DNA of 63,083 nt, counting the filler, from Bipalium vagum (Eukaryota), in the NCBI GenBank assembly GCA_037834085.1. It is 3 parts of 3 records of this genome, joined end to end, with 100 filler letters (N's around TTAATTAATTAA, not from the genome) between each part and the next. Parts side by side here need not be neighbours in the genome. Positions count along the whole stretch, not along the records: positions 47,129 to 63,083 come from JBBMKC010136098.1; 2 more parts are not named here. One strand, given 5' to 3'. The first letter of the stretch is position 1. Every line of letters begins with the position of its first letter. The translations under genes were made by a program, and so were the position numbers. Under the pieces are notes generated by a model. It was given only the letters and a program-made list of their open reading frames with translations, had not been told where the DNA came from and searched no databases. Below are positions 47,129-63,083 of the stretch, in pieces.

Positions 47129-47173
<45 letters not shown>

Positions 47174-47186
47174 AATTATTATTACA

Positions 47187-47277
47187 ATGCCATCGACATT
47201 ATATTATGCAATGTTTTCAACCTGGGTCCAAATCTGGATCTGGTTTTGCGTGTTTATTATGTTTAAAATGTCCGAGG
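47187..47277 (+). CDS. signal-peptide exon of the FN3-array gene
   Basis: MPSTLYYAMFSTWVQIWIWFCVFIMFKMSE, then a 23-nt GT-AG intron (47278-47300) in phase 1, matching FN3 unit 1. Confidence 0.7.
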
Positions 47278-50200
47278 GTTGATCTCTGTTCCGATTTCAG
47301 AGAGCGGGCCTGTATCATCAATGACATTTTCCAGTCTTTTTCCCACAACACCTTTATTAATTATATGGCAACCCCCCTTGGAACCGAACGGCGAAGTTGT
47401 TCGGTACTCAATCTCTGTCCACAATGTCTCCGACCACTGGTGCTTATTTAAACTGTTCGTGGACTGCGTCGATTGCTCAAACAACGTGAGACCCTTCCAA
47501 CTATGCTTGGTATTGTCTATACTTAACATACCCCTTCAGATATTGTCTTTGATCCTTCCAAATAATATCACTGCCTCCTGTCGAGAGATATTGAAGAACT
47601 CAAATGTATTCACCAAGACAAACTCGTCGTTTTCCATCGTCATTGATGATCCTTTGATTCGACCCTATGTGGAGTACGAGATCGTGGTTGTACCTCTGAA
47701 TGGGTTTGGATGGGGTAATGAGACCAAATTGATGAACAGGACCTCTCAATATGGTTAGTGCTGTCATTCTCTCATTTCGATTATAGATAAAAATAAATTA
47801 ATCTTTTCTTCTTACTTTTATGATGTCCTTCTTGTTTAAGTAAGTGGACCAGTATCATTTTTANNNNNNNNNNNNNNNNNNNNNNNNNNNNNNNNNNNNN
47901 NNNNNNNNNNNNNNNNNNNNNNNNNNNNNNNNNNNNNNNNNNNNNNNNNNNNNNNNNNNNNNNACTCTGTCCAGCTTTTTTCCGTCAAAGCCTCTTTCAG
48001 TTGAGTGGAAACCCCCTTTGGAACCGAATGGGGAAGTGGTTCGGTACTCGATTTCTGTCCACAATGTCTCCGATCACTCGTGCTTATTGAAAATGTTCGT
48101 AGACTGCACCGATTGCTCAAACAACGTGAGACCCTTCCAGCTATGCTTGGTATTGCCTTTACTTACCATATCTCTTCAGATATCGTCTTTGGTCTTTCCA
48201 AATAATATCAATGCTTCCTGTAGAGAGATGTTAAAGAACTCAAACGTGTTCTCCAAGACGAATTCATCATTTTCCATCGTCATTATTGATACTTTGATTC
48301 GACCCTATGTGGAGTACGAAATCGTGGTTGTACCTATGAACGGGTTTGGGTGGGGTAAGGAGACCGAAGTGACGAAGAGGACCTCTCAATATGGTTAGTG
48401 CTGTCATTCTTTCATTTCGTTTAAAGACAAAACAAATAAATCTTTTTTCTGTTTCATTTTGCTTTTCTTCTTTAATTTCAAAAATGGCAGACCGTTTTGT
48501 TCTGTCAAAGTCTCAATTTTTAATCTGAAATAATTTTATTTATTTATTTATTCCTTTTTATTATTGGACTGACATTAAGGGTAAATGAAAATTGTGTTTC
48601 GAAATAGGTCTGTTCGTTGTGGAGAATGAAATGAATTCGTTGCTGGCTTAAATGGACAATTTATTTTTGTGTCTCGCGGGAAATAGTTTTGATTAAATAA
48701 TCAATTTTTCATTGAATATGCATAAATAAATCAATATCGAAGATATTTATGTTCATTTCCAACAGGTTTGTTTTTTGTACTACTGTAAGAGAGGTGGAAG
48801 CGAGCTGGTGGTGCGGAGAAAACACTTGGTCATGTGTGTGTGTGTGTGTGTGTATTTGTCGGGGAAGGAAGTGGCGCGCTTTCAGATCGTTTGTGCTAGA
48901 ATTGTTGTTCAAAATTCCGCACTGGATATTTTAATGTAAACCTATCGCACTTCTCCCTTCATCATGGCGGTCAAGATTCAAAGTCGGTTAATCATCTGAA
49001 AGCATCGTTGATCAGATCTTCGAGATGAACTCGACTTTGGTAGATCATCAAGATCGAAATTGTTTCCTCTAAAGAGAACGAACCATTCGTGAACTGATCT
49101 TTCTGATACATTATTTTTCAATAGTGCACCGATATTTTGGGCGGTCTCCCAGCATTTGGTCCGTAACGAAATTCATAGAACATCACATTTCTGATGTTGG
49201 TGGAGGAATCACGTGAAGAAAGGGTCTTAAAATCCATCTGTTAGTTGAAATAATATTTCTTAAGATTCTAAAACAAAAACCATGGCAGGATTTATTGATT
49301 AATTTATCAAATTATCAAAAGATTTGTACAGATGGTACAATAATCAAATTGATTTAATATTGAAATAAACCAATGGAGACATTTCCACCAATGCAATGAA
49401 TCGCGGTCCCGGTCTTCGTGAGTCTAAAATAAGGGAACACCCAATGCAATCTGCGATTCACTTCAGAAACATGGAAAACCAGTCTATTTTTGATATAATT
49501 TGCGTTTGATAACAGGATAATACTCAACACATGATGGGGAGCATGGCCACGATCCATGGCAAACAACGTCAAAGCCAGGATTGTTCCAATGAAATTATTG
49601 CTTTCAAATTAGTGGGATTTTAAAGGTGTCCTCTTCTATGATGAGGTGCTTCTAGCATCTGGTACAAGAATTGTTTCTGATCTGTAATGGTTGCCATTAA
49701 CAAAATGGACCTTAGTAATCCAAGATAAACGCCAGAAAATGCAAAATTGCCAACTGGTATATTTTCAGTTCGACAGGGCTAGACTCCATAGCCCTTGTTC
49801 ATCCGGAACGAACTATGGAATCTGTCTGGCATTTATTGCTTCATATCCCTTGATCATCGGACTTGGGTCTTATCGACGCTGCGACAACCTTTCAACGGGA
49901 AATCTTTCAGGGACGGTGAGTCACTGTAAAGTCTCCTCAACTCATTTTTATAAAAGAAACCCTAAGAGTTCTACGAACCATTCTATGATAGTTAGAAGGA
50001 CAAAATGCACAATTAATTCTTGAATTATTAATCTGAATGGACATTCCATAATTCATTAAATTTTTTTGTCAAAAAATGTTTTCCCAGTTTTATCTTTTTA
50101 TTCAAAACCGAACTCACCAACCAAATTTTTAAAATAATTCTGAGTTTATTTTGAAGCTAGTGGACCCGTGTCGACCATAACAGCTTCCAGCTCCTTTCCA

Positions 50201-53200
50201 ACAAAACCTCTTTCACTAGAATGGGCACCGCCCTTGGAACCAAACGGCGAAGTTGTTCGGTACTCAATCTCTGTCCACAATGTCTCCGACCACTCATGCT
50301 TATTGAAACTGTTTGTGGACTGCACCGATTGCTCAAACAACGTGAGACCCTTCAAACAATGCTTGGTATTGCTTTCTTACCATACCACTTCAGATATCAT
50401 CCTTGATCCCTCCACATAATATCACTGCCTCGTGTAAAGAGATATTTAAGAACTCGAACGTATTTTTCAAGACAAACTCGTCGTTTTCAATCGTCATTAA
50501 TGATCCTGTGATCAGAGCCTACATGGAGTACGAAATCGTGGTTGTACCTCTGAACGGTTTTGGATGGGGTACCGAGACCAAACTGACGAAGGGGACTTCT
50601 CAATATAGTTAGTGCTATTATTCTCTCATTCTGATTAAAGATAAAATAAATAAATCTTTTCTCTTTTTCATTTTACTTTTCCTCTCTCAATTTTCTCCAT
50701 CGATTTCTGAATCTTTTTATTCAAAATAAATAAATAAAATTATTTCAGAGTAAAAACAAATAAATTAAAAATTTTCCAATTTCTGTCGACTTCTTCTGTG
50801 ATGTTTTGTTATTTCAAGTTAGTGGACCCGTGTCGTCCTTAACCACATCCAGCTCTTTTCCGTCAAAGCCTCTCTCAGTTGAGTGGACACCACCTTTAAA
50901 ACCAAACGGAGAAGTGGTTCGGTACTCAATCTCTGTCCACAATGTCTCAGACCATACATGCTTATTAAAAATGCTCGTGGACTGTGTGGATTGCTCAAAC
51001 AATGTGAGATACTTTAAACAGTGGTTGGTATTTCTTATACTTACCATAACCCTTCAGATATCGTCATTGGTCCTGCCAGGTAATAACACTGCCTCGTGTC
51101 CAGAAATGTACAAGAACTCCAATGTATTCTCCAAGACGAATTCGTCATTCTCCGTCATTATTAAAGATCCTTCGATTAGACCCTACCTTGAATATGAAAT
51201 TGTGGTTGTACCTCTGAACGGATTTGGATGGGGTAATGATACCACAGTTGTCAGGAGGACGGCTCAGTACAGTGAGTCTTATGATGTTTAAATCGAAAAG
51301 AAGGGATCTCCTGAATAAAATTCATTTCTTTTTAAATATCGTTTATTTATTTTTTGTTAAGTTGGAGATAAAAATATTATTTTAATTTTTCTTAAAATAT
51401 TTTTAAAATTGATTTATTAAAACAAAAAAAAATTGGAAAACATTCAATAACTTTTAAAGCAGCGATCCAAAGGGTTGATGATGAATATTATTAAGTCTGA
51501 AAAGACTTGTCAGCTTCGACAGAGCTCAATTCTACGGGAAAGATTTACTCTTCATAAATCGTTATTTGAAAATTGCCAATCATCTCAAAGTAATAATTAA
51601 GACAAGTGCAAAGGAGATAATTAAATGTCAACCAATATCTGTCAATTGTTAAAGAATCTCACAAGACTGATCTCCCACTCGAAAGGTCGAACTGTGATTG
51701 GATAGAGATCAAAATCGATATATGGGAAACAATTTCCACGCCCACGCAGTCTATTTTTGAGTCTGAAAGTGCTACGACGGAAGAACGAACAATTTTGACA
51801 CAGGCTGAACTTTATGCGTTATTTTGAATTCGACAGTTCTTTTAATCACCATCACAAGTACATGAAAATGTCAACAAGGGTCTCACTGACCGTATGTAAT
51901 CAAAACCAATAAGGTTTCATCATCACCTCGTGGTCTGTGGTGTTTGACTTTGCTCTGTAAATATTTTTCCGGCATCGGCACTGAAGACCTTTGATCCTAT
52001 TGCAAAACTTTTAATGAGCAACAGATTTTGATGATCAAGATTGTCAGTGAAGGGTTTCCTTTTGAATATTATAGCGTCAACAGCGGTTGAACTATACCAA
52101 GTTCTGTCTTGAGATTTTCAAATCGAAAAATCTTCTTCTGACGCTTGTCAACGACATCCGTGCCACCATTGGACGTTGAGAGATTGGTAGACATTTTATG
52201 TGAACAAACATAGCTTAGGCTTTTGGTTAAGGAGTTAGTGTCAGTATAAGGATGGTATGTTGAAGATAAGCAAATCTTTAAAGGTTTGTTAAAGAAAGAA
52301 GACGTTATCAAAGTTCTGAAGTTCAGATAGTAAATTTTCTGTAGAGAAAATGGTTAATTAATTCATTGGTACGCTTTGGTTGAATGCCGAAGACTCGTGG
52401 GATCTTAATTAGTTTGTGTATTGGACGACAAATCTGAGAATAAAAGGATAAAAGGAGGAAGATAAGAAGGGCTGAAAAATCATGAAAAAATACATAGGCT
52501 GTCCATTTGGACGGATCTTACTTAGGGCAATAGAAAGTAAGACTGGAATACCAGAACGACTAGAAGAACAGCAAGCTTTAAGAAATAGTAAGGAAAACCA
52601 ACCATAAAAAATTACCTAAAAATCAGAGGACCATCTAAAAGAAAGAGATATCTTTATCGTTTAAAAGAGAAAGGTTCAGCATGGTGTACACGAAATAAGT
52701 TTAGCAAAGCAAGATTTATATTGAAATATACAAACACCCCAGGATAAGGTCGCCGAGTATGATTTTGACAAAATGATGGAATTCACCTGACCACATGAAA
52801 AGGGAGGAAAGGATTTTCTTTTATTAAAAAAAATTTCTTTGTCATCTTTCTTTTCTTTTAGTAAGTGGACCCGTGTCCTCTTTGACTTCTTCCAGCACAT
52901 TTCCAGCAAAGCCTCTTTCAGTTGTCTGGACACCACCTTTGGAACCAAATGGCGAAGTATTTCAGTATTCAATTTCTGTCCACAATGTCTCCGATCACTC
53001 TTGCTTATTGAAACTGTTCGTGGAATGTACCGATTGTTCAAACAACGTGAGACCCTTCCAAATATCTTTCGTAATACTTATACCGATCATACTCCTTCAG
53101 ATATCGTCTTTGGTCTTTCCAAATTATATCAATGCTTCATGTCGAGAGATATTTAAGAACTCGAAAGTATTCTCCAAGGCCAATTCATCGTTTTCCATCG

Positions 53201-56200
53201 TCATTAATGATCCTTTGATCCGACCCTATGTAGAGTACGAAATCGTGGTTGTACCTCTGAACGGGTTTGGATGGGGCAACGAGACCAAAGTGACAAAGAG
53301 GACCTCTCAATATGGTTAGTGCTGTCGTTGTCTCATTCCGATTAAAGAAAATACAAATCTTTTCTTACTTCTTTTGTGATGTTTTTGTTATTTCAAGTAA
53401 GTGGACCCGTGTCACCCTTAACACTGACCAGCTCTTTTCCGTCAAAGCCTCTCTCAGTCGTATGGACACCGCCTTATGAACCGAACGGGGAAGTGGTCCG
53501 ATACTCTATTTCTGTCCACAATGTATCCGACCACTCGTGCTTATTGAAACTGTTCGTGGATTGCGCTGATTGTGCAAACAACGTGAGACTAATGGTGCTA
53601 TCTGTAACATGCTTTTATCTTGAACATCCTCTCTCAGATATCGTCTTTGGTCTCACCACATAATGAAACTGCCACATGTCTGGAAATAAAAACGAGTTCC
53701 AACTGGTTTTCAAAGACGAACTCGTCTTTCTCGGTTGTCATTAAAGATGCTCCCATCAGACCCTACACTAGCTACACAATCGCTCTCATTCCTTTGAACG
53801 GGTTTGGATGGGGTAACGAAAGCCGTGCAGATCTCAGGACTGACCAATATTGTGAGTTTTATCATTTGTTGCGACCTCACCATTTTCCCCTCCCCGAGGA
53901 CAGCGTGATATCGCTTGGCAATATTTTGTTTTTACCTTTTTATTTTTGCTCAAGGTCAAATGGGAACGAATTCTTCCAAGATTAAGAAAATTGGCAAGAG
54001 GGATTCGCGGTACCCTTTTAATTCTTCATTATCTTTCTTTTCTCTTCCAACAGAATATTCAGGCCAGAATCGTCGATATTGTCACTCGCAATGTTTATAT
54101 GGTGGGAAACCATAGCAACGCCTCTATCAGAAATTTATTATTGTTTTTTCTTCCTTCTTCATAAAAATTCCGTTCACACTGAATACGCCCTTTGCCTTTT
54201 GTCCTTTTTTAACCTCTTTCCTCGCATTGTTTCGATAATTATTTTGGAGAAAAGATATTATTATCATTATTTTATTTATTTATTATATAACGTAATATAA
54301 TCTTTTAAATTTGAAGATTTGTTTAAATTAATTAATTTAATCATTAAAAATATCGATCGAGTCGTTATTCTCAAAAAGTGATTTGACCTTGATGGTGTGG
54401 TGGAATGTATTTTGTGGTCATCCGGAAAATCCTGTCGATTTTGACCGAGAACATCAAAGAAAACGTTCATCAGTCTCTAACGCTTTTATATAACAAAATA
54501 TTCACCATTCTAGTCATTTATCCTTCGTCATGGGATTGGTAGTTGAGAAATCCCTCTCTGTATGAAATCTGAAGGCTTATTGGAGATGACGTCATCAAAG
54601 CTCTTCTTAGTGGGTTCCAATAAATCAAACCTCTATTCTTAATGAATTTTTGAGAAATAAGAAGAAATTGTAATCCGCGTTGCCAAAGTCATTGTAACCT
54701 ACAGTTTCGTATTACTATTATTATTATTATTAATTTGTAAGACAACAATCTTCCGTGTACTCAATTCTGGTCGTTTGTTTCCATATTTACCGTATGGTCT
54801 CCTCGTTGAGAACAATATGTTTCGGAATTGGTTTTCATTTTTGGACATCAACTTATAAACCCACCATACCTAGATCAATGCTTCTCGTCGACAAAGTCCA
54901 GTCTTTGGCATATATAAAGAGGTTTCACCTGCTTTACTCCAAAACATCGTCAAATTGGATCCATTTCTCAACTAACATTATAATCTGGTTTTAATAAGAA
55001 GAAACTTATTTCTTTTCAGTAAAAAAGAACTCGAAAAATTCGTTTCTTTCTGGAAAGTTTTTGTTAGTCTAAATATCGTATTGGCTGACGAATCCTAATT
55101 TCTGTTTATGATCGCGAATGGTGCTCTGGGGCAATTGGTTCTGCAATTCTGAAACATTCAGGATTCTGGTCTAGAATATTTTGGAAGATATCATTACGAT
55201 CATATGAGTGTCAAGGATTAGCAGTACCATCCCGATTGAAATTCTGCCGTTTGGGAAACAAGTAATGACACTTTCTTTATCCATTGGCCAAGGCATCATA
55301 GGTTTTGGTAATTACAGTTTTCTTCCTCAGACTAGGGAGAAAAACAAATTAAGGGTGCTTTAGTCAGATTTTGATGAAGTGGCCTACCAACCTATCCATC
55401 CTACCATCACTCCACCTGACAATCCAATCACCTCAAAGTGGAAAGGAAAGGGAAAGGCTATAGAATTTAAATTGACCGACCACTCCGCGCGTATGACATA
55501 AACTAGAAAACCAATCACAAAATCATGTTCGGTTCTTCTGACCCCACAAAACGTCGTTTTTCACAATATTAAAACAGATTGAAAAATTATTTGGAACTTT
55601 ATCTACATCTTGTTTTGTGAACTCTTACCTTCTTTCAGTTAGTGGACCCGTGTCGTCCTTTACCGCATCCAGTTCTTTTCCGTCAAAGCCTCTCTCAGTT
55701 CAGTGGACACCACCTTTCGAACCAAACGGGGAAGTGGTTCGGTATTCGATTTCTGTCCACAATGTCTCCGACCACTCGTGCTTATTGAAAATGTTCGTGG
55801 ACTGCGTCGATTGCTCAAACAATGTGAGACTCTTTAAACAGTGATTGATATTGCTTATACTTACTATAACCCTTCAGATATCGTCTTTGGTCCGGCAAGG
55901 TAATAGCACTGCCTCATGTCCTGAAATTTACAAGAACTCCAATGGATTCTCCAAGACGAACTCATCATTTTCCATTGTCATTAATGATCCTTTGGTTCGA
56001 CCCTATGAGGAGTACGAAATCGTGGTTGTACCTCTAAACGGATTTGGATGGGGTAATGAGACCAAAGTGACGAAGAGGACCTCTCAATATCGTTAGTGCT
56101 GTCATTTTCTCATTCTCATTAAAGACAAAACAAACAAATATTTTCTTCTTACTTCTTTTATGATGTTCATGTTTTTTAAGAAAGTGGACCAGTATCATCT

Positions 56201-59200
56201 TTAACTCTGTCCAGCTTTTTTCCGTCAAAGCCTCTTTCAGTTGAGTGGACACCCCCTCTGCAACCAAACGGGGAAGTGGTTCGGTACTCGATTTCGGTCC
56301 ACAATGTTTCCGACCATTCGTGCTTATTGAAAATGTTTGTAGACTGCACCGATTGCTCAAACAACGTGAGACCCTTCAACCAATGCTTGATATTGCTTTC
56401 TTACCATACCCTTTCAGATATCGTTTTTGGTCTTTCCAAATAATATCAATGCTTCCTGTCAAGAGATATTTCAGAATTCCACGGCATTCTCCAAGACGAA
56501 CTTATTTTTTTCTATCGTTATTAACGATCCTTTGGTTCGACCCTATGTGGAGTACGAAATCGTGGTTGTACCTCTGAATGGGTTTGGGTGGGGTAACGAG
56601 ACCAAAGTGACAAAGAGGACCTCTCAATATGGTTAGTGCTGTCATTCTCTTATTCCGATTAAAGATAAAACAAATCTCTTCTCTTTTTCCTCTTACTCTT
56701 CTTCTCTTAATCTTCTTCATCGTTTTCAGAGTGTTTTTACTCTGAAATAATTTTATTTATTTTTTTATTTCGAATTAATTTTGGGTCTTTTTTATGAATA
56801 AAAATAAATTAAAATTTTTCTCATTTCTGTCGACTTTTTCATGATGTTTTGTTTTTTTAAGTAAGTGGACCCGTGTCGTCCTTAACCCTTTCCAGCTCTT
56901 TTCCGTCAAAACCTCTCTCAGTTGGATGGACACCCCCCTTGGAACCGAACGGAGAAGTGGTTCGGTACTCAATTTCCGTCTACAATGCCTCCGACCACTC
57001 GTGTTTATTGAAAATTTTCGTGGACTGCACTGATTGTTCAAACAACGTAAGAATCTTCAAACTATGCTTAGTGTAGTTAACACTGACCATACCTCTTTAG
57101 ATATCTTCATTGGCCTCTTCTAATTATAACTCCTCAACATGCCATTCAATAAATAATAGCTCGAACGTATTTTCCAAGAGAAACTCATCGTTTTCCATCG
57201 TCATTAATGATCCTTTGATCCGACCATATGTGGAGTACGAGATCGTGGTTGTACCTCTGAACGGGTTTGGATGGGGTAATGAAACAAAAGTGACGAAGAT
57301 TACCTCTCAATATGGTTAGTGCTGTCATTCTCTCATTTCGATTATAGATAAAAATAAATGAATCTTTTCTTCTTACTTTTATGATGTCCTTCTTGTTTAA
57401 GTAAGTGGACCAGTATCATCTTTAACTCTGTCCAGCTTTTTTCCGTCAAAGCCTCTTTCAGTTGAGTGGAAACCCCCTTTGGAACCGAATGGGGAAGTGG
57501 TACGGTACTCGATTTCTGTCCACAATGTCATCAACCATTCATGCTTATTGAAAATGTTCGTAGACTGCACCGATTGCTCAAACAACGTGAGACCCTTCCA
57601 GTTATGCTTGGTATTGCCTTTACTTATCATACCCCTTCAGATATCGTCTTTGGTCTTTCCAAATAATATCAATGCTTCCTGTCGAGAGATGTTAAAGAAC
57701 TCCAACATGTTCTCCAAGACGAACGCATCGTTTTCCATCGTCATTAATGATCCTGTGATCAGAGCCTACATGGAGTACGAAATCGTGGTTGTACCTCTGA
57801 ACGGATTTGGATGGGGTAATGAGACCAAAGTGACGAAGATTACCTCTCAATATGGTTAGTGGTTTCATTCTCATCAAAATTAAAAATAAATATATCTTTT
57901 CTTCTTACTTTTGTGATTTTTTTATTGTTTAAAGTAAGTGGACCTGTGTCGTACATAACCGCTTCCAGCTCTTTTCCATCAAAGCCTCTGTCAGTTTTAT
58001 GGACACCCACCTTGGAACCAAACGGGGAAGTGGTTCGGTACTCAATTTCTGTCCACAATGTCTCCGATCACTCGTGCTTATTGAACCTGATCGTGGATTG
58101 CTCTGATTGTTCAAACAACGTAAGACTTTTCAAACTATTCTTAGTGTATTTAACACTGACCATACCCCTTTAGATATCCTCATTTGCTCCTAATTATAAT
58201 TCCTCAACATGTCATTCAATGTATAATAGCTCCACCATATTCTCCAAGTCGAATTCATCCTTTTCCATTGTCATTAATGATGCTGCAATCAGACCTTATG
58301 TAAACTACGAAGTCGTTGTTGTACCTTTGAACGGGTTTGGGTGGGGTAATGGAAGCCAGATTGTCTTCAGAACGAATCAGTACAGTAAGTTATCTAATTT
58401 GAACTAAATATAACCTTACTAATATAATGATAATGATAATAATATTTTTCAATTTTATTGTTCTTTATTTCTAAAGGATTGTCATCAGAAAATTACGTCA
58501 TTTCCTTACCGGAATTTAACAAGTGAACAATTTCGATCTGACCTTTGTTTTGTTTAACTGAGAAAATAATAAATCGACGAATACTTGTCTGACGAGATGA
58601 CCTTGTAAAAACTGGATATAAATATTCGATCGATTTAAACAAAAATGGTTATGTAAGAAGTAAAACAAGAATTTGACATGTCAAAGGATTGTTTGACTTT
58701 CAATTTTTCCCATACATTCGAACGAAAATCGAAAATTACTTTACATCGGTCCATTTACCTACTTATACATATATGATATTTAATGACCTTCAAAATGACC
58801 AATAACCCATTTAGTTCAAATGTTTTACCACATAATAAATTACTTTGGAATAGTTAAACAAAAGACCGAATGGCATATGACTCACCCTGATATTACTAAT
58901 TTTCTCTTTTTTAACCTATCCTAATTCTGTCAAAATCGACTTTCAGATGTCTAAGGACTTTCACCTTTCCCTTTTCAAACCCGTCTCCTTGTTTAAAAGC
59001 TTTAAAATATTTCCGACTTTCACTTTGGTCCTAGGGACGTTTAAAAGCAGTCATAAGAATAGGAAGGACTACTTACCCTTTAAGTCTACCAGAAAAATTC
59101 TGATATCTAATTGAAGATTTCTACTTGAACCAACGTAAACAATATGAATACCTAAGAATGGGTTTCTTGAGATAAGACTGAATTTCGTTGAAGTAGGGGG

Positions 59201-60751
59201 CGTCAAGGTTTTCTTGGACAGGTTTATCTGGACGACTTTCGCATATATTAATAGTAAAAAGAAACTATCAATTTTAAAATATCCCGACGTCAGGCTGTCG
59301 TCGGTTGAGTGTATTTTTTCCTAAATGAAGATCCCGGTCGGAAAGGATTACGCTCGTTATTTCTGAAATACTTTTACTACTCACAATTTCTATTAATTCT
59401 GTAATACACCTTTCCTGGCCTCTTCCAACAGAATTCAGATCACACGAGCATCTCACCCTTCACCTGTTCATGTCATCTTTAAAAACGTCATCTCTTTTTA
59501 TCACTCGACTGCAATCTTTCCTTTTTATCTGGAAAGATGGATCTTCAGATTCATAATTATAAGTGATCGTTGTCATTTTAAATCGGTCTTTAGAATTGTT
59601 CTTTACCCTTTCTTTTTATCACAGAATATCTGGATGAATGAGAAAAACCTTTTTAAAGTGGATTTACAATGGTTTGATGTAATTTGTCCATCCTTATAGA
59701 TATTTCTTTCAGTTAGTGGACCCGTGTCGTCCTTAACACTGTCCAGCGCTTTTCCGTCAAAGTCTCTCTCAGTCGTATGGACACCCCCTTTGGAACCGAA
59801 CGGGGAAGTGGTCCGTTACTCAATCTCTGTCCACAATGTCTCCGATCACTCGTGCTTATTGAAACTGTTGGTGGACTGTGTCGATTGCTCAAACAATGTA
59901 GGACTTTTCAATTTGTCTTTCAAATAGCTTATAATGATTAAACCCCTTCAGATATCGTCCTTGATCCTTCCAAATAATGTCAATGCTTCCTGTCAAAAGA
60001 TATTTAAGAATTCCACTGCATTCTCCAAGACGAACTCATCGTTTTCCATCGTCATTAATGATCCTTTGGTTCGACCCTATGTGGAGTACGAAATCGTGGT
60101 TGTACCTCTGAATGGGTTTGGATGGGGTAATGAGACCAAAGTGACGAAGATGACCTCTCAATATGGTTAGTGCTGTCATCCTCTCATTTCGATTAAAGAT
60201 AAAACAAATCTATTCTTCTTACTTCTTTTGTGATGTTTTTTATTTCAAGTAAGTGGGCCCGTGTCGTCCTTAACACTGACCAGCTCATTTCCATCAAAGC
60301 CTCTCTCCGTTGAATGGACACCACCTTTCGAACCAAACGGGGAAGTGGTCCGGTACTCAATCTCTGTCCACAATGTTTCCGATCACTCGTGCTTATCGAA
60401 AATGTTCGTGGACTGCGCCGATTGCTCAAACAATGTAAGAATGCCCAGACTATCCTTAGTGTAGTTAACATTCATCATACCCCTTTAGATATCCTCATTG
60501 GCATCTTCTAATTTTAACTTCTCAACATGTCATTCAATTTATAATACTTCGAACGTATTCTCGAAGTCGAATTCCTCGTTCTCCATCGTCATTAATGATC
60601 CTGCAATCAAACCTTATGGATATTACGAGGTCTTTGTCGTGCCTTTGAATGAGTTTGGGTGGGGTAATGGTAGCCAGGTTGTCTTCAGAACGAATCAGTA
60701 CAGTAAGTTATCTAATTTGTCCAGACACTTGTCTTAATAATATAATGATAA

Positions 60752-60802
<51 letters not shown>

Positions 60803-62888
60803 TAGTTGTAATATTTGTACTTGAATAAAGTTTATCTTTGAAATCTTAAGATATAAATGAGGGTATATTTGTTAAAGATCACCAGGGGAGGACAGTTGAA
60901 GGGGCAACAATGAGCTCTATTGAGACAGTGATCGTCCTGAGTCCTAAGAACCGAGCATCATTCACTCTTAAGTTGATGAAATGACGTCAGGCCCCATTTT
61001 AATTGAGAACGTGCAATGGATATCTCCTTTGATGGTCTTCCTATTTGGGACTTCCTTCTTCGCCACCCTTAAGAAATTCCGAGCCATCAAAAGCAGAATT
61101 GTCATGACATATTAAGACTACCATCATGCTTAGTTTACTCCTTTTCTCCACTAATGGTTGTTGTGGAAGTCACATTTATCTCTTGGATGGTTACTTGACA
61201 AAAACCTCTGCTTTCAAACCAGCTGTCTTGTTATTGAACTGGTCAACCCCTTGCCTGTTTGATCTTCTCCAACGGCTTTTTGACCTTCGAGTAGTAAGTA
61301 TGCTTCTCCTGGACTTCTGCAAACGAGATTTATATAGATTCACCATTATCCCTTGCGATTGAAGCACATCTGGATCCCTCGAAAACGAATATAGATGTTT
61401 CGAACATAGTCTTGCGTATTCAATTACATTTTGGTGGTGCTACCACAATATCATTGACCAAGGATGGAAATAGCTCGTTCTGTCTGTCCTTGGTATCGCT
61501 TTAGACTGATTTCTTTCCTGTTCACTTTTTCGTCCTATCACCATGTCACGTAAGATGCCATGGAGAGGAAGTCACGTTGACCTAACTTCTCCATCACTAT
61601 CAACCACTCTCCGGAACTTGAACACATCCTCGATGAAAGGGGTACTTTTCCTTTCATGTCAAAGACAGATTATTTACATTGGTCACACTTCCGCTGAAAA
61701 TTTAGTGACATATTAAAACAAATTCCTTTTCGAAACCCAATTTTGTACGCCGACCTTTCACTGAGAGTATCCCTCATCAAGTGTGTGATCTTCTCAGAAT
61801 AAAAGTTAAACATTTTTCAAGGCAGAATTTCAACTGAACGGTTTTATCAGGGAATAAGGTTTTCTGTTTTCTCTTTGTCAAATGTTTTTTCTTGCAGTCA
61901 GTGGACCAGTGTCGTTCTCAACTGCATTCAGCTCATTTCCATCAAAACCTCTGTCAGTTGAATGGAAACCGCCTATGGATCCAAACGGGGAAGTGGTTCG
62001 GTACTCGATTTCTGTCCACAATGTCTCCGACCATTCATGCTTATTGAAACTGTTCGTGGACTGCACCGATTGCTCAAACAACGTGAGACCCTTACAGCAA
62101 TGCTTGGTATTGCCTTGACTTACCATATCTCTTCAGATATCGTCTTTGGTCTTTCCAAATAATATCAATGCTTCCTGTCGACAGATGTTAAAGAACTCCA
62201 ACGTGTTTTCCAAGCACAATTCATCGTTTTCCATTGTCATTAATGATCCTTTGGTTCGACCCTATGTGGAGTACGAAATCTTATTTGTACCTCTGAACGG
62301 GTTTGGATGGGGCAATGAGATTAAAGTCACGAAGATGACCTCTCAATATGGTTAGTGCTGTCATCCTCTTATTTCGATTAAAGATAAAACAAATATGTTC
62401 TTCTTACTTCTTTTGTGATGTTTTTTTATTTCAAGTAAGTGGGCCCGTGTCGTCCTTAACACTGACCAGCTCATTTCCATCAAACCCTCTCTCAGTCGTA
62501 TGGACACCCCCTTTCGAACCGAACGGAGAGGTGGTTCGATACTCAATCTCTGTCCACAATGTCTCCGACCACTCGTGCTTATTGAAACTGTTCGTGGACT
62601 GCACTGATTGTGCAAATAACGTGAGAACTTTCATCTTTTCCTTGACATTTAGTACCTTCAACATTCTTTTAAAGATATCTTCACTGGTCGTGCCAAATAA
62701 TAACAACGTTTTCTGTCGGGAGATATATAATAACTCAAACGTATTCTCCAGAGCGAACTTGTCATTTTATATTGTCCTTAGTGATTCATTAATCAAACCG
62801 TTTTCCAATTATGAAGTCATTGTTTTTCCTATCAACGGTTTTGGATGGGGTAATGAAACCAAGAACACCTCGAAGACCGCTCAATATG
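47187..62888 (+). CDS. giant secreted or cell-surface protein: signal peptide plus at least 15 tandem Cys-insert FN3 domains (3' incomplete; possibly a receptor-PTP-like ectodomain)
   Basis: 31 exons with GT-AG boundaries and consistent phases, about 2025 aa if all are joined. Each unit: SGPV..LSVEWTPPLEPNGEVVRYSISV..CLLKLFVDCxDCSNN|ISSL..C..IRPYVEYEIVVVPLNGFGWGNE..RTSQY, carrying the FN3 W, Y, LxPxxxY and NxxGxG signatures. Confidence 0.85.
47301..47753 (+). CDS. FN3 unit 1 (exons 47301-47485, 47540-47753)
   Basis: 185-nt and 214-nt exons, 54-nt intron. Confidence 0.9.
47841..48393 (+). CDS. FN3 unit 2 (exons 47841-48125 interrupted by an N gap, 48180-48393)
   Basis: Same unit; 100-N gap inside the first exon. 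Confidence 0.85.
48833..48853. repeat. (TG)n microsatellite
   Basis: Direct repeat. Confidence 0.85.
48980..49245 (-). mobile_element. mariner N-terminal fragment in an FN3 intron
   Basis: IRNVMFYEFRYG...VSERSVHEWFVLFRGNNFDLDDLPKS. Confidence 0.8.
49480..50030 (+). mobile_element. mariner catalytic-domain fragment in an FN3 intron
   Basis: KLLLSN*WDFKGVLFY; VYFQFDRARLH; YP*SSDL. Confidence 0.75.
50157..50607 (+). CDS. FN3 unit 3 (exons 50157-50341, 50394-50607)
   Basis: 52-nt internal intron. Confidence 0.9.
50819..51271 (+). CDS. FN3 unit 4 (exons 50819-51003, 51058-51271)
   Basis: 54-nt internal intron. Confidence 0.9.
52862..53314 (+). CDS. FN3 unit 5 (exons 52862-53046, 53101-53314)
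   Basis: 54-nt internal intron. Confidence 0.9.
53398..53851 (+). CDS. FN3 unit 6 (exons 53398-53582, 53638-53851)
   Basis: 55-nt internal intron; divergent second exon. Confidence 0.9.
53940..54960. mobile_element. decayed mariner-like fragments in an FN3 intron
   Basis: KLARGIRGTL, IVDIVTRN and MVWWN resemble KLDKWVPHEL, LDRIVTCD and VWW motifs. Confidence 0.45.
55639..56091 (+). CDS. FN3 unit 7 (exons 55639-55823, 55878-56091)
   Basis: 54-nt intron containing an in-frame TGA. Confidence 0.9.
56181..56631 (+). CDS. FN3 unit 8 (exons 56181-56365, 56418-56631)
   Basis: 52-nt internal intron. Confidence 0.9.
56862..57314 (+). CDS. FN3 unit 9 (exons 56862-57046, 57101-57314)
   Basis: 54-nt intron with an in-frame TAG; chimeric second exon. 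Confidence 0.9.
57402..57854 (+). CDS. FN3 unit 10 (exons 57402-57586, 57641-57854)
   Basis: 54-nt internal intron. Confidence 0.9.
57935..58384 (+). CDS. FN3 unit 11 (exons 57935-58119, 58174-58384)
   Basis: Second exon is 211 nt (one-codon in-frame deletion). Confidence 0.9.
59713..60165 (+). CDS. FN3 unit 12 (exons 59713-59897, 59952-60165)
   Basis: 54-nt intron with a stop codon. Confidence 0.9.
60250..60702 (+). CDS. FN3 unit 13 (exons 60250-60434, 60489-60702)
   Basis: 54-nt intron with a stop codon. Confidence 0.9.
60860..61700 (-). mobile_element. possible decayed non-LTR reverse-transcriptase fragment in an FN3 intron
   Basis: Higher GC; weak matches to D..SAFD and VL.P..F motifs. 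Confidence 0.35.
61898..62350 (+). CDS. FN3 unit 14 (exons 61898-62082, 62137-62350)
   Basis: 54-nt intron with TGA. Confidence 0.9.
62436..62888 (+). CDS. FN3 unit 15 (exons 62436-62620, 62675-62888)
   Basis: 54-nt intron; divergent second exon; ends at a GTTAGT donor. Confidence 0.9.
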
Positions 62889-63011
62889 GTTAGTCTTTTA
62901 AAATGTTATTAAATGGCGACATTGGACCACTTTTTTATAAATAATTAAACAAAAACAAGTTTCTAATTTGTTTTTTTCAATAATATTTGATAATTAATAA
63001 TAATGATGCAA

Positions 63012-63083
<72 letters not shown>
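63012..63083. repeat. (TAT)n microsatellite
   Basis: Direct repeat to the window end. Confidence 0.9.

Follow-up and report, generated by a model that had tools for sequence, protein, structure and literature searches.

Do the repeated domains of a long tandem array descend along a single duplication tree, or have they exchanged segments with one another since they arose? The question is raised by a piece of about 16 kb from the genome of Bipalium vagum (JBBMKC010136098.1), which closes the window, that is, the whole 63,083-nt stretch of DNA to which it belongs. The piece carries an array of 15 tandem units on the + strand at 47301-62888. A first-pass annotation had read these units as patchworks of shared blocks; all 15 were found where it had placed them, and their exact exon and intron limits were obtained. 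In each unit a 185-nt exon A is separated by a 52-55-nt intron from exon B, which has 214 nt in all units but unit 11, where it has 211. Apart from that exon, the exon sizes, the phases (1-0-1) and the GT-AG splice sites are identical in 15/15 units. The frames are open in 15/15 units and all 60 splice sites are intact, while the internal intron contains in-frame stops in 6 units and has a frame-breaking length in 3. Every unit encodes one FN3-like domain, with roughly 133 aa, four cysteines and 3-6 N-glycosylation sequons. Intact frames and symmetric phases throughout would permit the splicing of any subset of units. The gene extends beyond both ends of the piece, inside which only FN3 units, and no transmembrane or phosphatase part, were found. 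Microsatellites lie at the ends of the piece.

The array has a two-unit periodicity, in which pairs linked by introns of 80-90 nt are set apart by introns of 1.2-1.8 kb. Two types of 3' end follow the same rhythm, the first preceding short introns and the second preceding long ones. All units lie on the + strand. Unit 1 (47301..47753; exon A 47301-47485, intron 54 nt, exon B 47540-47753) is divergent in its 5' third, and in unit 2 (47841..48393) exon A is divided around a gap (47841-47863 and 47964-48125) and is followed by a 54-nt intron and exon B at 48180-48393. Unit 3 (50157..50607; exon A 50157-50341, exon B 50394-50607) has an intron of 52 nt. Unit 4 (50819..51271; exon A 50819-51003, intron 54 nt, exon B 51058-51271) ends in the second type with a GTGAGT donor, and a 1590-nt intron then leads to unit 5 (52862..53314; exon A 52862-53046, intron 54 nt, exon B 53101-53314). 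Unit 6 (53398..53851; exon A 53398-53582, intron 55 nt, exon B 53638-53851) likewise has a second-type end, followed by an intron of 1787 nt. Unit 7 (55639..56091; exon A 55639-55823, intron 54 nt, exon B 55878-56091) resembles unit 4 in columns 1-300, yet has the first-type 3' end. Next come unit 8 (56181..56631; exon A 56181-56365, intron 52 nt, exon B 56418-56631) and unit 9 (56862..57314; exon A 56862-57046, a GTAAGA intron of 54 nt, exon B 57101-57314), the latter with a first-type end, and then unit 10 (57402..57854; exon A 57402-57586, intron 54 nt, exon B 57641-57854). Unit 11 (57935..58384; exon A 57935-58119, GTAAGA intron 54 nt, exon B 58174-58384, one codon shorter) ends in the second type before a 1328-nt intron. 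Unit 12 (59713..60165; exon A 59713-59897, exon B 59952-60165) has a 54-nt GTAGGA intron, and unit 13 (60250..60702; exon A 60250-60434, GTAAGA intron 54 nt, exon B 60489-60702) has a second-type end before an intron of 1195 nt. The array closes with unit 14 (61898..62350; exon A 61898-62082, intron 54 nt, exon B 62137-62350) and unit 15 (62436..62888; exon A 62436-62620, intron 54 nt, exon B 62675-62888), whose exon B is the most divergent of the array.

The FN3 assignment was examined by profile search and through a homologous protein. With Pfam fn3 (PF00041), unspliced read-through gave 25.4 bits for unit 1 and 23.5 bits for unit 5 against a curated cutoff of 25, both scores being depressed by an 18-residue insert encoded by the intron. 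Read-through was used for units with a stop-free 54-nt intron; exons were otherwise searched separately and unspliced, and exon A alone scored 16.2 bits (E 0.012). The only close homologue, P0001, reached 124.9 bits in 4 stretches and contains four units in series, joined exactly at the predicted exon junctions, with the proviso that P0001 may be a gene model. The FN3 fold is a seven-stranded beta-sandwich. An AlphaFold prediction for P0001, made from the single sequence without an alignment, is all-beta with about 7 strands per unit, at a mean pLDDT of only 43.9. The position of the internal intron is the same in two unrelated contigs, L001 and L002.

Known relatives of a unit that combines FN3 with a four-cysteine insert amount to a single unnamed protein in the databases plus a few fragments from metagenomes. 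A word search with P0001 returned only the protein itself, a PDB sequence search gave only weak matches to generic FN3 domains, an exact look-up of one window ORF in public assemblies found no match, and neither did a search of Rfam. Purifying selection acts on the gene, with pN/pS of 0.13-0.41 at pS of 0.42-0.53. The exon pairs are almost certainly spliced in series, judging from the sequences of the array and of P0001, and the protein is probably secreted or membrane-bound, with an extracellular location. Taken jointly with the whole explanation set out below, it is very likely that the piece comes from the interior of a single large animal gene for a multi-FN3 protein.

The block sharing that suggested a mosaic was borne out in each instance. 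Units 9, 11 and 13 have in common the GTAAGA intron and the block N(Y/F)N.STCHS, so that the middle of unit 9 resembles units 11 and 13, but their 3' ends differ: unit 9 ends in NETKVTKITSQY, and units 11 and 13 in NGSQ.VFRTNQY. Units 4 and 7 have the same intron and the block GN.TASCPE.YKNSN, and again their 3' ends are unlike. Unit 10 follows unit 2 through REMLKNSN, to about column 330, then carries DPVIRAYMEY as in unit 3, and thereafter resembles units 7 and 9. The unit-3-like segment spans 68 nt (57737-57804; columns 337-404) without a difference from 50490-50557 in unit 3, and the sequence to either side of it does not resemble that unit. Unit 8 is a patchwork that combines a 5' end resembling units 2 and 10, a 52-nt intron resembling that of unit 3, with a 2-nt deletion common to the two, and an exon B resembling unit 12, with which it has NASCQ.IF.NSTAFSK in common. 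The closest relative thus changes along the units, at 96-100% identity in 50-nt windows, on a background of 77.5% mean unit identity and silent divergence of about 0.3-0.5. The most variable block is the stretch directly after the cysteine-rich insert.

Such a pattern might be expected without any exchange, if parallel substitutions under similar selection, together with saturation, made unrelated units look alike in places. Silent divergence is indeed high (the pS given above), and 56% of informative site pairs are incompatible. The Hudson-Kaplan minimum count was 37, compared with 33 +/- 5 in simulations without recombination; it is uninformative, because saturation alone gives equally many four-gamete conflicts, and it was dropped. 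The arrangement of compatible sites along the units tells a different story. The PHI test, run beside the NSS test, gave z = -5.9 with 14 units and -7.3 to -7.6 with 15, and 0/5000 permutations were as low. In 100 single-tree simulations without recombination and with the same site rates, z was -0.45 +/- 0.9, with a range of -2.4 to +1.5, so that the observed clustering lies far outside both permutations and simulations. The signal persists when PHI is restricted to third codon positions (z -3.2, p 0.001), and intron bases, as well as the 2-nt deletion of units 3 and 8, fall within shared blocks. Given the third-position signal and the introns in shared tracts, selection-driven convergence is no explanation. 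A history without exchange is therefore strongly disfavoured, and its probability is close to negligible.

Conflict among trees leads to the same answer. Three segments of the unit were compared, namely exon A, the intron joined to the 5' portion of exon B, and the 3' portion of that exon. The exon A tree places units 2, 10 and 8 together with 96% support, the middle-segment tree groups units 2, 14 and 10 at 97% and units 9, 11 and 13 at 100%, and the 3'-segment tree joins unit 3 with unit 10 (81%) and unit 6 with units 11 and 13 (94%). The segment trees reject one another in the AU test, with p from below 0.001 down to about 1e-98, and cross-segment lnL differences are 59-142, compared with a simulated maximum of 17-45 in 25 simulations. 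Well-supported clades conflict among segments, and no single duplication tree fits the array, as the first-pass annotation had claimed. A longest-identical-run test, a simple GENECONV analogue, ranked pairs 3/10 and 12/14 best at p 0.0005, which is the permutation floor; after Bonferroni correction p is about 0.05, and this result is offered as description, not proof.

The shared sequence is not confined to patches within units. Tracts were mapped by in-register mismatch maps; a blastn self-comparison at identities of at least 90% missed most of them. One tract (47627..48285, + strand) starts midway along exon B of unit 1, spans the intron between the two units and reaches into exon B of unit 2; it is about 95% identical to the stretch from unit 9 to unit 10 (about 57188-57746), and its inner part, 47741-48040 with the gap omitted, has 2 differences in 200 nt. 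A second (60036..60298, + strand) begins in 3' exon B of unit 12, crosses the following intron and takes in the first 50 nt of unit 13. It is about 95% identical to the corresponding sequence in units 14 and 15, beyond which differences are dense on either side, and includes an exact 63-nt match at 60236 and 62422. Shared tracts are 1-6% diverged, compared with about 30% at silent sites overall.

The following history would account for these features. The array would have grown by tandem duplication, and ectopic homologous recombination between misaligned units would later have exchanged sequence repeatedly. Short non-reciprocal patches of about 50-150 nt would resemble gene conversion, and tracts of 250-660 nt through short inter-unit introns would resemble unequal crossing-over or long conversion. 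The outcome would be mosaic units with segments that have different closest relatives. Flanked short patches are present in units 10 and 8; in a single genome, direction and reciprocity are unreadable from them, and we infer the division between conversion and crossing-over. Duplication followed by ectopic recombination, by conversion plus unequal crossing-over, in a large multi-FN3 gene is very probably the correct reading.

Staggered tandem duplication by unequal crossing-over alone could have produced one chimeric unit per growth step while copying blocks of one or two units. It would explain why long tracts span unit boundaries and short introns, and would fit the two-unit periodicity of short and long introns and of 3'-end types. 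Domain repeats, moreover, are reported to expand usually by several domains per event and in mid-array (PMC1553488); in that study, Björklund, Ekman and Elofsson (2006) inferred duplication patterns from protein similarity, without a test for recombination. A single crossover, however, does not yield flanked internal patches such as the 68 nt of unit 10 or the four-part unit 8. The partners are often far apart (2/10, 3/10, 8/12), with units between them that show no co-duplication, and the long introns have no similarity in common save the first 60-100 nt after units 11 and 13. Crossing-over as the sole process is therefore unlikely, although part of the mosaic is a by-product of unequal crossing-over during array growth. 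Since tracts cross unit boundaries and array growth itself gives mosaics, the apparent shuffling of cassettes is ordinary ectopic recombination, for which no dedicated mechanism is needed.

The preferred reading, duplication with ectopic recombination, assumes that the units are assembled correctly. The mosaic might instead be an artefact in which the assembler switched between paralogues in identical stretches of short reads, or collapsed copies. The piece is bounded by microsatellites, and a 100-N gap falls exactly in its most repeat-like stretch. These N, at 47864-47963 inside exon A of unit 2, are an estimated length that is no multiple of 3, and they sit within the longest exact repeat common to units 2, 8 and 10. 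The left flank (47841-47863) is the opening 23 nt of exon A, and the right flank, from 47964, continues from unit column 24 onward, so that the flanks are in register and 23 + 162 = 185 nt make exactly one exon A. The frame is preserved if the true gap is zero or equals whole units; whole units could lie within it, and the uncertain copy number at this point calls for caution in annotation. Throughout the tests, the first 23 columns of unit 2 counted as missing data, and no letters were supplied in their place.

In addition, a look for sequencing runs that contain the stretch gave no RNA run and a single run overall, which keeps it as short contigs that break within units. Nevertheless, exact matches between units reach 77 nt at most (median 31 nt), so that ordinary reads of 100-150 nt bridge each shared stretch, which makes a chimera of assembly unlikely. 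Shared blocks also differ from one another at 1-8% of positions, so that no unit is pieced together from others in the assembly. Unit-specific Logan contigs have a depth of 17-27, compared with 26 on a unique intron contig, which is single-copy depth, and random mis-joins would ensure neither 15 intact frames nor 60 intact splice sites. Logan contigs covering 58056-58390 (unit 11) and 60332-60700 (unit 13) have no differences from the assembly; they come from one run, probably the assembly's own source, and being short they are silent on the long-range order of units and on what the gap contains. Other letters in Logan contigs were considered as alleles and rejected, as they are cross-mapping paralogues (unit 2 on 10, unit 14 on 12). 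An origin of the mosaic in the assembly is highly improbable.

A different role for the array was also considered, in which it would be a germline diversity generator for a recognition receptor, with units that are included alternatively, or that vary in number and sequence between individuals. Such diversity generation has been proposed for other invertebrate immune or self-recognition gene families, and if it took place here, conversion between units would furnish new combinations of binding surface. The position of the most variable block, and the freedom of splicing that frames and phases would give, are in keeping with such a role. Over roughly their first 35 nt the inter-unit introns show somewhat stronger conservation (p-distance 0.15-0.18) than third positions do (0.24-0.32). 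No complementary partner for these intron starts was found within the piece; a docking site might lie beyond it. Folding of the short introns did not surpass that of shuffled versions, and no selector-like pairing was seen. Past exchanges stand from the earlier claim of repeated recombination, but nothing in the sequence analysis points to ongoing generation of new combinations or to programmed diversification. As far as the sequence speaks to function, a diversity-generating role would be very unlikely.

Arthropod Dscam offers a comparison. Both have tandem, duplicated and phase-compatible exons for Ig-superfamily-type domains, or parts of them, of a cell-surface protein (PMC3364881, PMC3236188), but Dscam hypervariable exons are mutually exclusive and without gene conversion (PMC3236188), whereas the present array has strong conversion-like exchange, four serial units in its homologue P0001 and no selector-like pairing. 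The predicted serial units of P0001 argue against a Dscam-like reading with one unit per mRNA. Gene conversion in tandem families has been detected by GENECONV-type tests (Sawyer 1989, as cited in PMC3236188). As in concerted evolution, there are high-identity patches on a diverged background, conflicting phylogenies, and an effect at silent and intron sites; in contrast, homogenisation is weak here, and what has resulted is a patchwork of old segments, not a set of nearly identical copies. The repeats of multi-FN3 and multi-Ig extracellular proteins offer a further parallel, with a one-family tandem array, phase-symmetric exons, multi-unit duplication blocks and change in mid-array, whereas here a conserved short phase-0 intron interrupts each domain, and sequence exchange is statistically shown within one gene.

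R3-type receptor tyrosine phosphatases have an ectodomain built of FN3 domains only, then a transmembrane helix and a single phosphatase domain. The array resembles PTPRJ/DEP-1, PTPRB, PTPRQ and FNDC7-like proteins in its long FN3 runs, the motif PP.(E/D)PNG..(V/I).Y and heavy N-glycosylation. The nearest named sequence match is a cluster that includes a Ciona savignyi protein-tyrosine-phosphatase, and the nearest Atlas clusters by features are PTPRJ-like fragments, which serve as a lead only. The match to R3-type phosphatases is, however, confined to the generic N-terminal half of the unit, and no named relative was found for the four-cysteine insert and the 3' half.

The mechanism is textbook and well known for repeated-domain genes, and the protein family is worth a note, given that a unit of FN3, four-cysteine insert and conserved internal intron has almost no described relatives. 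The array is a clean and statistically solid case of exchange among the domain-coding exon pairs of one gene, in which short patches and boundary-crossing tracts are both visible in a single array. For the phylogeny of the family it carries a warning, in that only trees made segment by segment have any meaning for these domains.

The piece at 47129-63083, which is AT-rich (GC 0.30-0.43), holds 15 tandem units on the + strand, delimited by conserved anchors. Each unit comprises two exons, A and B, around an internal intron. Exon A has 185 nt throughout; the intron has 54 nt, except in units 3 and 8 (52 nt) and in unit 6 (55 nt); exon B has 214 nt in all but unit 11 (211 nt). The frame is open in 15 of 15. 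The phases run 1-0-1 (start of exon A, internal intron, end of exon B), with GT at each internal donor and AG at each acceptor. The stretch between the exons is a true intron, because it contains in-frame stops in six units and has a frame-breaking length in three, it diverges similarly to third codon positions (p-distance 0.30-0.39 versus 0.24-0.37), and the predicted junction of exons A and B is the exact join of both halves in P0001, a close homologous protein.

The four specific statements of block sharing in the first-pass annotation (a common intron and block in units 9, 11 and 13; differing 3' ends in units 4 and 7; a unit 10 that follows unit 2 and then unit 3; and sharing of unit 8 with units 12, 3, 2 and 10) are all correct at the protein and the DNA level. 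In a 50-nt sliding comparison, each unit has different closest relatives in different places, often at 96-100% identity. Unit 10 is unit-2-like, then identical to unit 3 for 68 nt, then like units 7 and 9, and unit 8 is a four-part patchwork. Beside such short internal patches there are long tracts that cross unit limits: one extends from midway in exon B of unit 1 across the intron into exon B of unit 2 and is ~95% identical to its equivalent in units 9-10; another, from the 3' part of unit 12 across the intron that follows it to nucleotide 50 of unit 13, has its match in the equivalent stretch of units 14-15. The pattern is consistent with homology-dependent exchange that does not reach beyond the units and their short flanks, and conversion-like patches occur in it alongside crossover-like tracts.

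The PHI test was used on the 14 full units (z -5.9) and on all 15 from alignment column 24 on (z -7.3), and all 5000 permutations gave higher values; the neighbour-similarity score concurs. Columns 1-23 of unit 2, which has an assembly gap, were set as missing in all tests, and the gap was not filled. Because silent sites are strongly diverged (pS 0.42-0.53) and conflicts affect 56% of site pairs, the tests were calibrated by simulation. In 100 alignments simulated on the single best tree, with site rates from the real alignment, PHI z averaged -0.45 +/- 0.91 and never fell below -2.4, versus an observed -7.6. In the real alignment, third positions alone still carry the signal (z -3.2, p 0.001). 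Maximum-likelihood trees of exon A, of the intron with the 5' part of exon B, and of the 3' part of exon B hold well-supported conflicting clades, and every segment rejects the trees of the others in the AU test. The lnL penalties of these cross-segment trees are 59-142, versus at most 17-45 in 25 no-recombination simulations. PHI, AU and the simulations support the earlier proposal that no single duplication tree explains the units and that they have recombined with one another. A four-gamete minimum recombination count was dropped as uninformative here.

Chimeric assembly could in principle produce a mosaic of this kind, and the stretch is present in a single public run, which is probably the one behind this assembly and is available as short contigs. 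However, the longest identity between any two units is 77 bases (median 31), the shared blocks are diverged rather than identical, unit-specific contigs show zero differences at a depth equal to that of a unique intron contig, and every frame and splice site is intact. The block mosaic is real, and a chimeric origin is unlikely.

An N gap at 47864-47963 interrupts exon A of unit 2. Its left flank of 23 nt corresponds to unit columns 1-23 and its right flank begins at column 24, such that the flanks sum (23 + 162 = 185 nt) to exactly one exon A, in register; therefore, a true gap of zero or of whole units would preserve the frame. The written 100 N, no multiple of three, is a length estimate only. 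The gap lies within the array's longest exact repeat, common to units 2, 8 and 10 (77 nt between units 2 and 10, 68 nt between units 8 and 10), which is the likely reason that the assembler stopped there, and next to it is the tract that was shared most recently, which differs from the junction of units 9 and 10 at 2 of 200 nt. Therefore, the unit count at this place is uncertain, and whole units may be hidden in the gap.

The inter-unit introns fall into short (80-230 nt) and long (1.2-1.8 kb) classes, and the long ones divide the units into (1,2), (3,4), (5,6), (7-11), (12,13) and (14,15). Two old types of unit 3' end exist. The first, ..NETKVTK.TSQYG with donor GTTAGTGCTG, stands before short introns whose start is conserved; the second, ..RT.QY(S/C) with donor GTGAGT or GTAAGT, is found in units 4, 6, 11, 13 and loosely 15, and precedes the 1.2-1.8 kb introns. 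The two classes hint at an ancestral two-unit higher-order repeat, and the 5' and middle parts of the units disregard this division. The long introns have no mutual similarity, except that those after units 11 and 13 resemble each other over their first 60-100 nt; nothing coding was found in the long introns, and an Rfam search gave no match. After units 1, 2, 3, 5, 7, 8, 9, 10, 12 and 14, the first ~35 nt of the inter-unit intron are conserved (for example, 53315-53349 and 60166-60200), with p-distances of 0.15-0.18 versus 0.24-0.32 at third codon positions of those units and 0.30 in the remainder of the intron. This may reflect a splicing signal or simply a position inside conversion tracts; no RNA structure was found.

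An AT-rich element of 33-35 nt recurs in three longer inter-unit introns, after unit 2 (48517-48549, +), unit 8 (56732-56766, +) and unit 3 (50724-50758, inverted). The inverted copy, with 97% complementarity, suggests a small inversion within an otherwise homologous intron. The intron after unit 2 also has a (TG)n run at 48826-48853, and (TAT)n, (TAA)n and (ATT)n microsatellites occupy 47129-47184, 60735-60789 and 63012-63083, that is, both piece ends and the intron after unit 13.

For domain searches, exons were used singly and unjoined, and unspliced read-throughs were taken from units without a stop in the intron. Pfam fn3 matched exon A alone at E 0.012, exon B alone gave no Pfam match, and the read-throughs scored 25.4 and 23.5 bits, where the cutoff is 25. 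A PDB sequence search gave weak matches of the PP.(E/D)PNG..(V/I).Y strand to FN3 domains of insulin receptors and receptor phosphatases. A profile built from five read-through units and run against 1.84 billion proteins retrieved one close relative, P0001 (UniParc UPI0005FF8A4E; 513 aa, E 5e-96), which is made up of four such units, one after the other, with an fn3 score of 124.9 bits over four stretches, together with a few metagenomic fragments; the remaining matches are long multi-FN3 proteins, aligned only over the unit's N-terminal half. Two fragment contigs, from an unrelated Logan run (L001:343-792) and an ENA metagenome (L002:136-572), carry the two-exon unit at 40-50% protein identity with a short intron at the identical place, so the unit type is conserved in some other animals.

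The P0001 units alternate A-B-A-B in nearly identical copies, one with a hybrid N-terminus; therefore, a recent two-unit duplication or homogenisation occurred in its species too. At the internal exon junction, one P0001 unit has 7 additional residues and another is without about 14, a pattern that suggests a splice or gene-model variant. Each of the 15 units here has four cysteines, of which exon A encodes three and exon B one, as well as 3-6 N-glycosylation sequons; because of these features and the FN3 matches, the array may be read as encoding an extracellular chain of glycosylated FN3 domains. Among named proteins, the FN3 arrays of PTPRJ/DEP-1-like phosphatases are its nearest relatives, a lead rather than an assignment of membership.

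The array is under purifying selection: pN/pS is 0.13-0.41 across four sub-regions, peaking in the 5' part of exon B, directly after the cysteine-rich insert. Diversifying selection has left no sign in any of the four. Nothing indicates that the exchange is ongoing or programmed.

It is well documented that domain repeats grow by tandem duplication of several domains at once (PMC1553488). Conversion is the rule among tandem paralogues of multi-copy families, and Dscam exon arrays are notable for its absence (PMC3236188). Dscam exon arrays, which are the obvious analogue of a cassette system, undergo mutually exclusive splicing, whereas the close homologue of the present units, P0001, has its units in series; no selector-like RNA pairing was found within the piece. 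A diversity-generating cassette system, the only exciting reading of the array, is improbable, and nothing was found in its favour. The process seen in the array is a known one, of which the array adds a new case, from a family of FN3 variants that has been little described.
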